This document shows, piece by piece, positions 7,011 through 12,590 of a stretch of DNA of 64,000 bases. The DNA is taken from the NCBI GenBank assembly GCA_965240325.2, contig OZ251225.1, forward strand, positions 2,976,001 through 3,040,000, in the 5' to 3' direction. Position 1 is the stretch's first letter. Each line of letters opens with the position of its first letter. A program made the translations under genes and the position numbers. The notes beneath the pieces are model-generated. The model saw nothing but the letters and a program-made list of their open reading frames with translations, did not search any database and was not told the origin of the DNA. Source of the DNA: Rebecca billardiae RCC1528 (lineage: Eukaryota; Protista; Haptophyta).

Positions 7011-10000
7011 ATGCTGAACGTCGGTCGAGCCGTGGTGCAACCGCGGCATGATCTGGACCTCCCACGCGTGGTCCTCATCGCCGACCCGGTGCGCGCTGCG
7101 CCGCCGCGCGCCCGCGTGCTCCGAGCGGGCGGGGCTCACGGCGCGTCATGCGCGGCCGCCCCCCTGCACACCACAGGGCCCGGATCCAGACGATGTGAAG
7201 GCCCTGCTCATCGCGGCCATCATGCACAAGGAGCAGCAGCTCCAGTTGTGCGCGGTCATCGCCAACGGCGGGCAGCAGGCTGTCGAGCGCGCCGCGCTCG
7301 CGTGCTGCCTGCTCGACCACATGCACGAGCGCAGCGTGCCCGTCGGGATCGGCTCGCAGGGCCGGGCGTACGTGCCGTGCGCGCACGAGTACGACTTGCA
7401 GCAGTTCGACCTCGAGCGGCTGCGCCCGCGGCTCCGCGACGGCGCGGAGCTGCTGCTGAGCGTGCTCCGCGACGCGCCGCCCAAGTCGCTCACCATCGTG
7501 TGCATCTCCTCGCTGCGCGACCTGGCGGACGTGATGGCGAGCGCCCCCGAGCTGGTGATGGAGAAGGTGGCGACCGTCGCCGTGATGGGCGGTCTCGCGC
7601 GCGCCCACGACGCGGCCGACGGCGCGGCGCCCTGGCGCGCCGACAACAGCGTGAACAACCTGTTCGACCTCGAGGCGGCCGAGGCCGTGTACACCTTCTG
7701 CTTTTCGCGCGGGCTGCCGATGGCGATCACGTCGCGCAACGCGGTGCCGCTGCTGCCGATGCAGCTGGCCAAGTCGTTCGCCGCGCGGACGGAGTGTCCC
7801 GTCATGTCGTACCTCGCCGACGCGCAGTTCCTCGGCCTCGAGGGCCTCTGGCAGAAGCTGTGCGCGGGCGAGCTGCCCGCGCGCTGCGACATGCGCTGGT
7901 ACTTCCAGACCTTCTGCGGCGTCGACGCGGCCGAGTTCGACGCGCAGGGGCTCGAGTCGAGCTTGGACGGCGAGACGGACATCCTGGAGTACCTGAACGG
8001 CAACGTCAAGCCGTACGACGTGGTCGCGCTCATGACGGTGCTGCCCGCCACGCGCCACCTGTTTGAGCACTTCTCGGGCGCGCGCTTCACGTGGCACGGC
8101 GTGCGCCACCTGCTGCTGCTCGAGCCCGAGCACATGATCGACGTGAAGCACGTGCTCAAGCTGCTGCGCGACGTGTACCACGAGGTGGTGCTCGTGACGG
8201 TGGGCGGCGACGACGACGCCTCGCTCATCCGCACCTCGCGCCTCGCGCGCGGCTCGAGGCGGATGGTCCAGTTCTCGCGCTCGGCCGCGCGGCCGTTTGC
8301 CGAGGTGTCTCGCACGCTCTCGGCGTCCTTCCTGCGCATGGCGGACGAGCCGTCGCAGGCGTCCACCTCGCGCTCCTCGCTGCCGGCGGTGATCGACCCG
8401 GCCCCCTTCCGCCGCGACTCGCGCACGAGCAGCGCCGGCGGCAACACGCCGGCGTCCACCACGCGCGGCACGCCGCAGGGCGCGTCGTTCACGCGCAACC
8501 TCCGCACGGAGGTCGGCTGCATCCCGCTGCCGGAGCTCGAGGCGCTCTTCGAGGAGGCGTTCGCGCAGGCGCGGCATCGGCAGGTGCACGTGACGCTGCC
8601 CGCGGCGGTGACGGGGTCCACGATGCTCACCGCGCTGCTGCTCGCCGCCTGCATCGACGAGGGCCTCCACTGGAGCCTCGAGGGCTGCGCGCGCGTGCAG
8701 CTGGAGGTGCGCGTAAGGCTGTACGCGACCGCGGCCGCGTTCGCCATCCCGACGTGCTTCATCGGGCTGCACCCGATGGAGAGCTACCGGCGGATCATCC
8801 TCGGCGGGCTGGTCGCCGCGCTCGTGCTCGCCTTGGGCGGCGCCGCGCTCTACCTCTTCATCGCCATCCACGAGGCGCTCGGCGAGGCCGCGCACGCGCT
8901 GCGGCCGGGCGAGGCGCCGCCGTCCGGACGCCGCGTGGCGGAGCTGGTGCACTTCTTCTCATACGGCCTCTCCGCGCTGCTCGAGCTGCTCGCCGCGCTC
9001 TTCGCGGCGGCGCTCGTGTGCTCGCAGGCGCGGCGGAGCCCGCGCTCCCTCCTGCGCGGCCTGTGGACCGTCGGCGGCCTCGTCATCTTCTTCCGCGGCG
9101 TGGGCGACTCGGTCCGCACCTGCACGTCAGCGCTGACCGCGCGCTTCGCCGGCTGCGGATCCGCCATCTGGGTGGCGAGCGCGTGCGACAACCTGAGCAT
9201 GCTGGTGTTCGGCGTGCTGATGCTCACGCCGATCACGCGGCACATGGCGCAGGCGTGGATCGTGCGCATCTCGCACGCCGAGGGCAAGCTCGCCGCCCTC
9301 GCGCCGCTGCTCGGCTTCGGCACGCGGCACGAGCTCGAGCCCGCGCGGCTCGTGAGCTCGGCCATGCGCACGTTTCTGCCGGCCACGCTCAGCGCGGACG
9401 TGCTGGGGCGGATGGTGCTGCACGCGCAGTCGGGCGGGCGCGAGCTGCCGCGGACGGCGTCGGCGAACCGCGAGGTGTTCATCCGCGCGAAGGAGCTCGC
9501 CTCGGACACGAGCACGCGCTTCGCCGACGCGTTCGTCGTCCATTCGCACCGCGACGACGGCGCGCTGCGCAAGGCGCAGCTCGAGCGCTGGGCGGCGCGC
9601 TTCCGGCAGGAGCACGGCCGCGACCCGCAGGTGTGGATCGACCAGCTGTGCACGGACATGTCCCTCGACGAGGGCGTGGAGATCCAGCACATCCTCGTCT
9701 ACCTCGCGCGCTGCCGCTCGCTCCTCGTGCTCTGCGGCCCCACCGTCGCCGACGAGCACCTGTGCGTCGCGGAGCTGTGGGCGTGGCGCGCGCTCGGCGG
9801 CGATCTCGGCCGCGCGCAGGTGCTGCCGGTCGCGCGCGACGTGGTCGAGCTCGAGCAGGTGGTCGCGGGGCTCGACGCGTTCCACGTGCGGCTCGCGAAG
9901 GGGCGCTCGTGGAGCCGCGCGGAGGAGCGGCGCATCCGCTACGCCATCGAGATCGAGACGGCCTCGCGCGTGAACGAGGCGATCAGAGACTACACGCCAC

Positions 10001-10395
10001 TCGCCACCGCCGCCGCCGCGCGCGTGCGCGAGACGCTGCCGCGCTCGCCGTCCTTCCGCAGGGGGAGCGTGTCGGTGCCGCAGCCCGCCGCCGACGCGGC
10101 TGTCGTGCCGATCTCGATCGCAGGGGCCCCCACCAAGCGCGGCCCCGGCGGGCTCGACGGCTCCGCCGAGTTGGCCGACAGGCGCCTGCTGAGCACCTCG
10201 CTGAGCACCATCGCCTCCGCCGGCGAGCGCGAGGAGGTCCGGCGGCACTCGATGGCCGAGCCGAGCAGCGACAGAAAGGAGTCGCGGCACTCGAGCGTGT
10301 CGTCCGTCGGCCTCCAGCCGCGCGGGAGCTCCGTCGACGAGACCACGCTCGAGGTGACGGATGCCGGACCGGCTGCTGACGAGCTGCCTTGTTGA
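7011..10395 (+). CDS. Nucleoside hydrolase-like / multi-TM / TIR-like fusion protein; exons 7011-7088 and 7177-10395
   Basis: Removing GT-AG intron 7089-7176 rebuilds VVLIADPGPDPDDVKAL (IU-NH Asp-rich motif); also VAVMGG, NNLFDLEAA, YDVVAL; hydrophobic helices at ~8600-9270; C-terminal DAFVVHSHRDD...VWIDQLC...LLVLCGPT...LCVAELW. Confidence 0.75.
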
Positions 10396-10507: not shown

Positions 10508-10541
10508 AGAGAGAGAGAGAGAGAGAGAGCTATAGAGAGAG
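10508..10541. repeat. (GA)n microsatellite
   Basis: Direct reading. Confidence 0.9.
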
Positions 10542-12590
10542 CAGACGCACGAGAGCTAATAAATGCTCGTGAGAGGAGCAGTCCGAGGTAGTATTATTGA
10601 TAATTACTCATTTAATTTTAAAAAAATCACATATATAAGTATGTAAAAAGCGCGTTACTATACAGTACGTTACACGGCGGTTACACTTACAACCTGAACG
10701 ACCTGAAGTCCACTGGGGATTTGGGCTGCTCGCGTGTTTTGCCCCTGCGGAGGCTTCGGGCACTGCTGGACGACCAGTGATACAATGCGAACCTGGCTGG
10801 TACTCACTCAGCTCCCGCACATATTATTATAAATAATTTCGCACTCGCTTACTGTGTGAAGGATGGCGCGGCAACCTGCCACCGTGAGCCTTACGCGCGT
10901 TAAAACAAATAGACTGTAGTAACGATTAACTCGCGACGGTGCGATGACCCGGGGCTGTGCCCGACGAGTAACGATATGGCGGCGTATGTTAGTCGTTAGA
11001 GGAGAGTACTGCATGGTCAGACAGGCGCCGTGCGGCGCCATCAATAAATAAATGATCTGCTACGCCGATCTTCGGGTAGCTAAACAACGAAGTTGAGGCG
11101 GCGCACGGCGGCCCTAACGTGAACCATAGTTGTCGCGTTCACGAATCAATCACGCGCTGACGCCGAGCTCGTGAGCAGCTGCCGGCTTGTGACAGACACG
11201 GTCACGGTCGGACGGTACTCGACGGTGCATGAGCCGTGCAGCCGAGTCAGCCGACCATGCTGCTCAGTGTAACGGCGACGCAGCGAGGCAGCGAGGCAGA
11301 GCGGCGCGCAAGATCCGACCTCACGGCCGCAGGAGCGCACGGCGCGAGCGGCCCGGCCGCCGTCGTGCCGGTGCACGGCGGCGAGCAGCCGAGCCGACAG
11401 GGTACTGTAGGATAACCGCGACCGATGGCCCCGATGGACTTGCGCCGACCCGATGACTGATGAGCCGACCCGTGGGCACCGCCACACATTGAACATGCGC
11501 GGGCTGCTGCCACAGGGAGGCCCGGGCGGCAGCTTGCTGAATTCTCCTATTCACGAATCGAACATTTTCGCTCGTGAAAAATACCCGGAAAGCTCAGCTG
11601 TGCAAAGCTGTCATAATATATGGCCCAACCGCCGCGGACAAGTCGCCATCAACAAACTCGGATCGCTATATATTAATCAATGGGGGGGGGGTCAAGGGTC
11701 GTACGTGAAGCGGTAGAAATTCTTATGCTCATGATCGAGATTTTCAGGCCCGGCCATCATTCGTTGATGAGTGAATTGATCGATGACTCATCAACAAATG
11801 GTCATATGGGGGTATGCATCAAGCTGTCCCAGATGACGCCGGTCGAGAGCAAGAATGTTCGCCTTCAGGATATTGTGTCGTTCATCTGAAATACAAGAAT
11901 TGGATTGCCACCCGCGCATTGACCTCGAATCAGTATAGACCAAAAGTATATCGGCAAGAGAATCACGAACGGCCCACCATATGAGAAAGGTGCAGGCGTC
12001 TTTTTTCCTATTTGAGTTCCATTTCTTCTATAACTTACTATCTTAAAAATAAAAGGCAGTAGAAACGCAATCAACTGAATCTAATCAAGGGCAGTGCAAT
12101 CCACTCAAATGCGCGTTTCACACCTAATAAATCCACCTACAAAATCCCCAATAATAAAATCCTGCTCGCGCATGCTCTTTTTGGATTTTGCGGGCGTCAC
12201 CCCCCCCCCCCCCCCCCCCGGCTTTCGCTCACGCTCAGACCTTCCGCTCCGGGGGGCGTGCGCGCCATAATACTAGCTAGTCGTCCGCCGCCGGTTTTGT
12301 CATCGCGCGTTTCTGCGAGACGAACGACCGCCGATCGTCGATCTCGGCGGGCGGCTGATGCCTCATTGATCAGCAGACGACTTGTCAGTCGTCCCGGACT
12401 GCCGCAGTCAGTGCCGCACTGTCCGCGTCGTCAGCGCATCATCTTCGGAGTGCGTGTCGCGATCGGCTGATCGCGTCCACTCACCTGCGGGGCTCTGCTG
12501 ACTGCTCCGACGACGATCATCCGCCGCGATGACTTTTACCGGCGGATATTATGATTCTCGCAGCAAGACTACTCGCTCCAGCTCTCTCTC

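Follow-up and report, generated by a model that had tools for sequence, protein, structure and literature searches.

We identified, in a 64,000-nucleotide stretch of the genome of the haptophyte Rebecca billardiae RCC1528 (contig OZ251225.1, positions 2,976,001 to 3,040,000 of the forward strand; hereafter the window), a predicted gene whose product would be a single membrane protein composed of a nucleoside hydrolase, a linker, a six-helix membrane domain and a TIR-fold domain. On sequence comparison the N-terminal domain is a member of the HopQ1/XopQ clan and its active site appears strongly constrained. The C-terminal domain, as judged from its structural model, is a divergent TIR-fold domain with a glutamate at the catalytic position, and is neither a TIR nor a HET member at the Pfam level. 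Bacteria, plants and animals all use TIR domains for immune signalling, and little is known about how a host shuts off its own signal. The arrangement described here brings together, on one polypeptide, a candidate producer of an NAD-derived signal of the ADP-ribose (ADPR) type and a candidate enzyme for its removal or processing, and we think that the chance of the two domains working in this way falls only somewhat short of even.

The initial annotation of this DNA, made from the sequence alone, had proposed that an intron hides the N-terminal ADPGPDPDD motif. A putative 88-nucleotide intron with GT..AG borders was indeed found at this place (Table 1). The start codon lies in exon 1, together with the opening β-strand of the hydrolase fold (RVVLIADP) and the initial aspartate of a DXXXDXDD calcium motif, which the intron interrupts after Asp-Pro; exon 2 begins with GPDPDDVKALL, in frame with a long open reading frame (ORF) that runs open from position 7048 to its TGA stop. 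In 19 full-length homologues, the motif (I/V)TDPGPDPDD(V/I)KALL is unbroken and is preceded by only 4-60 residues. Since homologues with the unbroken motif include transcripts of the MMETSP collection, the predicted splice and start codon are both backed by homology. All domains lie in the single continuous frame of exon 2, and the same fusion is carried by transcriptome homologues, three of which (P0021, P0166 and P0170) are MMETSP ORFs; these two observations support one transcript rather than two separate genes. The searches described below were run with exon 2, exon 1 being read by eye, and residues are numbered along exon 2, with residue 1 the glycine at position 7177.

The N-terminal domain matched the Pfam family IU_nuc_hydro (PF01156) over residues 5-199, with E = 1.3e-12 and 48.4 bits for a gathering score of 34.2. 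The inosine-uridine nucleoside hydrolase (IU-NH)-like motifs noticed in the initial annotation are thus those of a nucleoside hydrolase (NH), but its type is HopQ1/XopQ and not generic IU-NH. Among all sequences of the PDB, the sole matches at E ≤ 0.01 were XopQ structures (4KL0, 4P5F and 7JLU chain B; E ~5e-24, residues 2-297), and the homologue P0035, whose N-terminus is intact, matched XopQ with E = 8e-26 compared to 6e-3 to 5e-2 for canonical IU-NH structures. The clan of HopQ1-like proteins (HLP) is defined by the DXXXDXDD calcium motif, which replaces the canonical DXDXXXDD (PMC11685791, PMC6019455). Read by eye across the exon junction, the window protein presents D-PGP-D-P-D-D, to be compared with D-PNK-D-P-D-D in XopQ. 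Canonical IU-NH membership was rejected on the basis of this motif, of a Tyr-Asp pair (KPYDVV) standing in place of the His/Asp pair (xHDxxA), and of the E-values, which favour XopQ.

In order to compare the active sites, XopQ numbering was transferred through the PDB alignment, and its offset was validated by L345, W361 and F366 falling on Leu, Trp and Phe, respectively. The alignment stops near exon-2 residue 297 (index 335 of the 379-residue 4KL0 chain), so that His433 is not mappable. Eight of the nine mapped catalytic or ligand residues of XopQ are kept in the window protein, the ninth, Tyr311, being an invariant proline. An alignment of 20 NH domains, that of the window and those of 19 homologues, shows no variation at the Asp, Trp and Phe positions, while L224 and Y280 each have one exception (19 of 20). 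These residues have defined roles in XopQ: L345, W361 and F366 recognise the adenine of ADPR, Y398 contacts its phosphate, and the D120N and D399N variants are inactive (preprint 10.64898/2026.06.15.732069). According to the same 2026 preprint, XopQ homologues hydrolyse the O-glycosidic ribose-ribose bond of the TIR product 2'cADPR, an isomer of cyclic ADPR, to yield ADPR, with an efficiency near the diffusion limit; 3'cADPR, pRib-AMP, canonical cADPR and nucleosides are left uncleaved, and TIR immunity is suppressed through this activity both in plants and in type VI Thoeris systems. The algal hydrolase probably performs an O-glycosidic cleavage of a cyclic ADPR isomer, as XopQ does, and not the cleavage of nicotinamide riboside that had been initially considered.

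The C-terminal domain (residues 760-945) matched no Pfam family, and no TIR model even at E ≤ 10; a word-indexed homologue search with residues 460-950 gave no matches. An exhaustive HMMER search with the C-terminal domain retrieved 1404 cluster representatives at E ≤ 1e-3, of which 494 at E ≤ 1e-10, and this number of representatives, matched by the C-terminal domain alone, puts the observation far beyond chance. Three of 49 close relatives matched the Pfam model TIR_2, with E ≥ 0.045, and distant relatives reached it over the whole domain (E = 1.5e-5, 25.9 bits for a cut-off of 28). The AlphaFold2 model, built with the 49 relatives, has a pLDDT of 90.7 and a β-α element repeated five times, and the structures that it matches are only those of TIR domains. 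The top 44 Foldseek matches in the PDB were all TIR (RPP1, SPARTA, RPS4, RPV1, RUN1, L6, MyD88, SARM1 and AbTir; E from 2.9e-4, TM ~0.5), as were all 50 entries listed by VIA-align, with Z scores of 8.3-10.8 and root-mean-square deviations of ~3 Å over 110-137 residues (best entry 7xoz_B, Z 10.8, 3.2 Å over 128 residues). The family profile also retrieved mostly TIR domains from the PDB, at sub-significant E-values (0.02-1.5).

The TIR-like domain reported in the initial annotation, including its conserved glutamate, is therefore confirmed at the level of the predicted fold. The family consensus reads (C/A/V)DAF(V/I)(S/V)HSWxDD .. GRxPxVW(L/I)DxxC(I/A)D(Q) .. LLVLxGPTYxxRLWCxxE(L/I). In the profile alignments, DAFxSHS of the family faces FDAFISYS, box 1 of TLR proteins, and the glutamate of WCxxE, which is Glu866 in the window copy, faces that of SNC1 (WCLNEL) and of TLR15/2 (WCQYEL). 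This glutamate is kept in 126 of 151 representatives; it is present in 16 of the 22 NH-fused members and in 132 of 163 others. The window copy retains D784, H789, S790, D793, W820, D822, C825, D827, G854, C863, E866 and G874. Judged by their residues, both active sites of the protein look intact.

The WIDxxC motif of the window domain had raised membership of HET (PF06985), the domain of heterokaryon incompatibility. No HET match was found in the window protein or in its 49 close relatives at E ≤ 1. Distant relatives gave weak and partial matches at their WIDKxCIDQ motif (~20 residues, E 0.02-0.14), too weak and partial for membership, which was rejected; they are kept as a remote resemblance, and the domain family sits between the Pfam TIR and HET models. 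UniRef names differ within the family: in Diacronema lutheri, P0151 (KAG8464703.1) is called "TIR domain-containing" and P0195 (KAG8457780.1) "Heterokaryon incompatibility domain-containing". These wavering names fit the published remote relationship between HET and TIR and the occurrence of HET-like domains in Haptophyceae (PMC4986451). The C-terminal domain could be a non-enzymatic TIR/HET module for oligomerisation or cell death, with a hydrolase chemistry taking place at the membrane and uncoupled from it. The proposed adaptor role of HET (PMC4986451), the missing Pfam TIR match of the window copy, the weak HET matches and the UniRef name of one member go in this direction, as does the fact that the glutamate is not universal in the family. 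We nevertheless consider this explanation unlikely. Most members keep the glutamate, the box-1-like motif and a helix of the WCxxE type, and enzymatically active TIRs (RPP1, RUN1, SARM1, SPARTA and AbTir) are among the closest structural matches. It would also be a strange chance if the fusion partner came from the only enzyme clan with a reported activity against a TIR product.

Between the two domains, the low-complexity linker and the roughly six hydrophobic helices anticipated in the initial annotation were both recovered, as were all the elements that it had named, each at the place given. The linker differs in length among homologues. The AlphaFold2 model of residues 456-760 (pLDDT 87.5) shows six long helices followed by a juxtamembrane helix, from which a conserved A..A.L.G motif leads into the TIR domain; a LAPLLGxG-type motif lies at about residues 706-713. 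An iterative search recovered this six-transmembrane-helix (6TM) domain ahead of the TIR-like domain in 133 members of a collection of 194 proteins, which defines the 6TM and TIR-like domains as the core module of the family. No relatives of the 6TM fold were found by Foldseek in the PDB (best E 0.056) or in the ESM Atlas (TM ≤ 0.41), and a wide VIA-align search (best Z 8.6) returned designed helical proteins and BAR domains, i.e. helical-bundle noise. The helices contain no conserved charged residue that would suggest a pore, and the domain is treated here as an anchor, a clustering device or a sensor scaffold rather than as a channel.

Whether the hydrolase and TIR domains share a side of the membrane was one of the checks suggested at the outset, and the predicted topology places them together. 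An even number of helices leaves both ends on one side. Exon 1 lacks a hydrophobic signal sequence and passes directly into the first hydrolase strand, and the family mean of Lys plus Arg residues is 11.8 in the predicted inside loops versus 4.9 in the outside ones, following the positive-inside rule. Both domains are thus probably cytosolic. In the metagenomic relative P0104, which carries a C-type lectin domain (Pfam, E 1.7e-8), a signal peptide and an additional helix precede the 6TM domain, a layout that fits a lectin outside the cell and a cytosolic N-terminus of the 6TM domain.

The same fusion recurs: at least 29 collected sequences carry both XopQ-like and TIR-like domains, and the named carriers are all Pavlovales (Diacronema lutheri, Pavlovales sp. 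CCMP2436 and MMETSP transcriptomes). Dozens of divergent paralogues are present per genome in Pavlovales. The best identity to the window hydrolase domain is 60%, indicating that the exact window gene is not in the database, and tblastn found no second copy within the window. Several other architectures were observed around these modules. P0048, a EukProt transcript of the dinoflagellate Gymnodinium smaydae, consists of the 6TM-TIR-like core without hydrolase and extends the core family past haptophytes. In P0104 (734 residues) and P0089 (873 residues), both from metagenomes, a C-type lectin is mounted on the core, in a layout like that of a pattern-recognition receptor. P0001 (1110 residues, ENA metagenome) contains two apparent tandem 6TM copies (24-290 and 478-785) and two TIR-like stretches, and may have arisen by internal duplication of the core module. 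The XopQ-like domain is found joined to TPR repeats in P0213 (774 residues) and in standalone forms of ~440-490 residues, among which P0209 represents 94 member sequences. A 2018 study had already recognised an algal clade of HLP, haptophytes among its members, from proteins trimmed to the NH domain and with no description of architectures (PMC6019455). We found no description of a XopQ/HopQ1-TIR fusion in the searchable literature on such fusions, on haptophyte TIR proteins, on HLP phylogeny and on inosine-uridine/TIR architectures. Taken singly, the parts of the protein are familiar ones; what that literature did not yield is their fusion, or the notion that a host might encode a XopQ-type enzyme linked to a TIR domain.

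The large and divergent paralogue family of Pavlovales, together with the sister architectures bearing C-type lectins, points to a putative role in immunity or non-self sensing. A housekeeping function is another explanation: the protein would be a membrane-bound enzyme of NAD+ or nucleoside salvage, or of nutrient scavenging, and would take no part in signalling or immunity. Plain hydrolase activity is within reach of both folds, and canonical IU-NH enzymes serve salvage. We hold this to be quite improbable: the domain is of the XopQ and not of the canonical type, XopQ and HopQ1 do not cleave standard nucleosides (preprint 10.64898/2026.06.15.732069, PMC6019455), dozens of divergent paralogues per genome would be unusual for a salvage enzyme, and both domains are predicted to be cytosolic rather than extracellular.

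In the initial annotation, the membrane protein was suggested to combine two glycosidase folds that could produce an NAD-derived signal and destroy it, or act on such a signal one after the other. Clan, fold, conserved glutamate and topology all agree with this idea in silico, and the hydrolase part of it can be sharpened to the XopQ type, the nicotinamide riboside chemistry being dropped. In the mechanism that we propose, the membrane domain would probably drive the clustering of TIR domains, which would cleave NAD+ into an ADPR-derived signal; this could be a cyclic isomer of ADPR. That TIR-made signal would then be hydrolysed by the XopQ-like domain, in the way XopQ converts 2'cADPR to ADPR. 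As long as breakdown kept pace with production, the signal would remain local, brief and subthreshold, so that TIR signalling would carry its own off-switch or noise filter.

Several observations weigh against this mechanism. On the side of the hydrolase, the phosphate-binding Tyr311 of XopQ is the residue that is an invariant proline in the algal family, implying that the substrate may differ from 2'cADPR. The activity of XopQ on 2'cADPR comes from a single preprint (10.64898/2026.06.15.732069), and an earlier report, as cited in PMC11685791, gave XopQ other substrates, 2',3'-cAMP/cGMP. On the side of the TIR-like domain, the window copy scores below all Pfam TIR models. It also has a leucine at 862, where most of the family has the tryptophan of the WCxxE motif, and another at 840, where a proline is found in 135 of 152 representatives. 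Finally, 6 of the 22 NH-fused relatives have lost the glutamate and none has lost the hydrolase site; in the copies without glutamate the hydrolase must work without a TIR enzyme in cis.

The two substitutions, at highly conserved positions, would also be expected if the locus were an untranscribed or decaying paralogue without function of its own, and in a large gene family some copies do decay. Yet the 1072-codon frame is uninterrupted, the three domains have kept every catalytic position and most of the conserved ones, and the intron is of the canonical GT..AG type, so we regard decay as most improbable. The protein could instead be a receiver: the XopQ-like domain may sense a nucleotide alarm coming from another source in the cell, such as other TIR proteins or an infection, binding it and slowly turning it over, and its occupancy may control the TIR domain as an effector that depletes NAD+ or produces a second signal. 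Such a receiver would resemble SARM1, in which a regulatory domain reads nucleotide levels. The conserved adenine-lid and ribose/phosphate residues of XopQ make an ADPR-like ligand plausible, both domains are predicted on one membrane side, and the NH module pairs with varied partners in this lineage or stands alone. The invariant catalytic aspartates argue for turnover rather than pure binding, and we give this possibility a low probability.

If the TIR domain makes a signal that the hydrolase of the same polypeptide breaks down, the protein would offer a directly testable model of self-limited TIR signalling, and TIR nucleotide signalling would be extended to the haptophytes, algae of ecological importance that giant viruses infect. 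Comparative genomics alone would then support the newly proposed biochemical role of XopQ/HopQ1. The family also points to a 6TM-TIR core, receptor-like and unnamed, that would be widespread in protists (1404 cluster representatives). A broader hypothesis, which we find attractive but doubtful, is that eukaryotic XopQ-type hydrolases are the cell's own off-switch for TIR-made ADPR signals and that pavlovophytes have fused the maker to the breaker. The fusion would then be independent "Rosetta-stone" evidence for a 2'cADPR-like TIR messenger in haptophytes, for the dedication of the whole HLP clan to TIR signals, and for the copying of a host-type activity by bacterial XopQ/HopQ1.

The features of the gene are collected in Table 1. 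The GC content is ~72% around the gene and the flanking DNA is GC-poorer. On the 3' side, an (AG)n microsatellite is found at ~10508-10529 and an AATAAA at 10558-10563, ~165 nucleotides past the stop; GC then drops to ~55%. Two antisense ORFs, of 625 residues (7075-8952, minus strand) and 538 residues (7146-8762, minus strand), overlap the gene. Their translations are rich in Arg, Ala and Gly, and they were set aside as high-GC artefacts because all homology lies on the plus strand.

Table 1. Features of the predicted gene, in window coordinates (residues of exon 2)
Feature	Position	Strand	Basis or remark
Exon 1, 26 codons	7011..7088	+	ATG at 7011, ends ..RVVLIADP; frame read from sequence
First Asp of DXXXDXDD, XopQ D116 (exon 1)	7083-7085	+	alignment
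Intron, 88 nt, GT..AG	7089..7176	+	GT 7089-7090, AG 7175-7176; inferred from homology to uninterrupted homologues including transcriptome ORFs
Exon 2, 1072 codons and TGA stop	7177..10395	+	single continuous frame with all domains; GPDPDDVKALL at 7177, TGA at 10393-10395
XopQ/HopQ1-like nucleoside-hydrolase domain, residues 1-350	7177..8226	+	Pfam PF01156 and XopQ matches
D3 (XopQ D120)	7183-7185	+	alignment
D5/D6 (XopQ D122/D123)	exon 2	+	alignment
L224 (XopQ L345)	7846-7848	+	alignment
W241 (XopQ W361)	7897-7899	+	alignment
F246 (XopQ F366)	7912-7914	+	alignment
Y280/D281 (XopQ Y398/D399)	8014-8019	+	alignment
Low-complexity S/T/R/P-rich linker, residues 351-455	8227..8541	+	composition; without family match
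Six-helix transmembrane domain and conserved juxtamembrane linker, residues 456-760	8542..9456	+	AlphaFold2 model, family conservation
TIR-fold domain (predicted), residues 760-945	9454..10011	+	AlphaFold2 model, Foldseek, VIA-align, family profile
Box-1-like ADAFVVHS	~9523	+	motif
FVVHSH	9532	+	motif
WIDQLC	9634	+	motif
LLVL (LLVLCGP)	9721	+	motif
CVAEL	9763	+	motif
Glu866 in CVAEL	9772-9774	+	middle of predicted helix αC
Low-complexity C-terminal tail, residues 946-1072	10012..10392	+	beyond the stretch of the TIR-like domain alignable to relatives

Compared with known systems, the algal protein is closest at its N-terminus to XopQ/HopQ1, its sole significant relatives of solved structure (E 5e-24 over ~296 residues), with which it shares the DXXXDXDD motif, the catalytic aspartate pair D120/D399, Tyr398 and the adenine lid formed by L345, W361 and F366. 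It differs by the proline found in place of Tyr311 and by its context, XopQ being a soluble effector secreted by bacteria whereas the algal domain opens a eukaryotic protein that is predicted to cross the membrane six times and also bears a TIR-like domain. With enzymatic TIR domains (plant RPP1, RPS4, RUN1 and L6; SARM1; bacterial SPARTA, AbTir and ThsB), the C-terminal domain has in common the predicted fold and order of elements, the box-1-like DAFxSHS and a glutamate four residues after the Trp/Leu of helix αC. Its sequence identity to them is however only 10-16%, the window copy stays below all Pfam TIR thresholds, and the algal family has its own HET-resembling W(L/I)DxxC(I/A)D(Q) after strand B; their scaffolds are NLR, ARM/SAM or Argonaute, whereas the algal domain is C-terminal to a six-helix membrane domain. 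In another haptophyte, Gephyrocapsa (Emiliania) huxleyi, TIR genes regulated during virus infection encode proteins with N-terminal transmembrane helices or an extracellular region and a conserved glutamate (PMC12489294). These are alike by description, being membrane-bound haptophyte proteins that keep the glutamate, and differ in that they are reported without added NBS or LRR domains and with no mention of a nucleoside hydrolase (PMC12489294). Fungal HET domains (PF06985) share a WIDxxCIxQ-type motif, weakly matched in relatives of the window protein over ~20 residues only, whereas the fold search with the window domain returns TIR structures. An analogy, and not a homology, can be drawn with self-limiting cyclic-nucleotide systems, in which a signal producer is likewise paired with a dedicated degrader. 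In type III CRISPR immunity, this degrader is a ring nuclease, and some effectors degrade their own activator. Viral and bacterial enzymes that cleave TIR signals belong to the same analogy, and pathogen-encoded degraders are covered in the discussion of the XopQ preprint (10.64898/2026.06.15.732069). In these systems, the producer and the degrader are different proteins, or the degrader is encoded by the pathogen, whereas here both would be carried by one polypeptide of a eukaryotic host.

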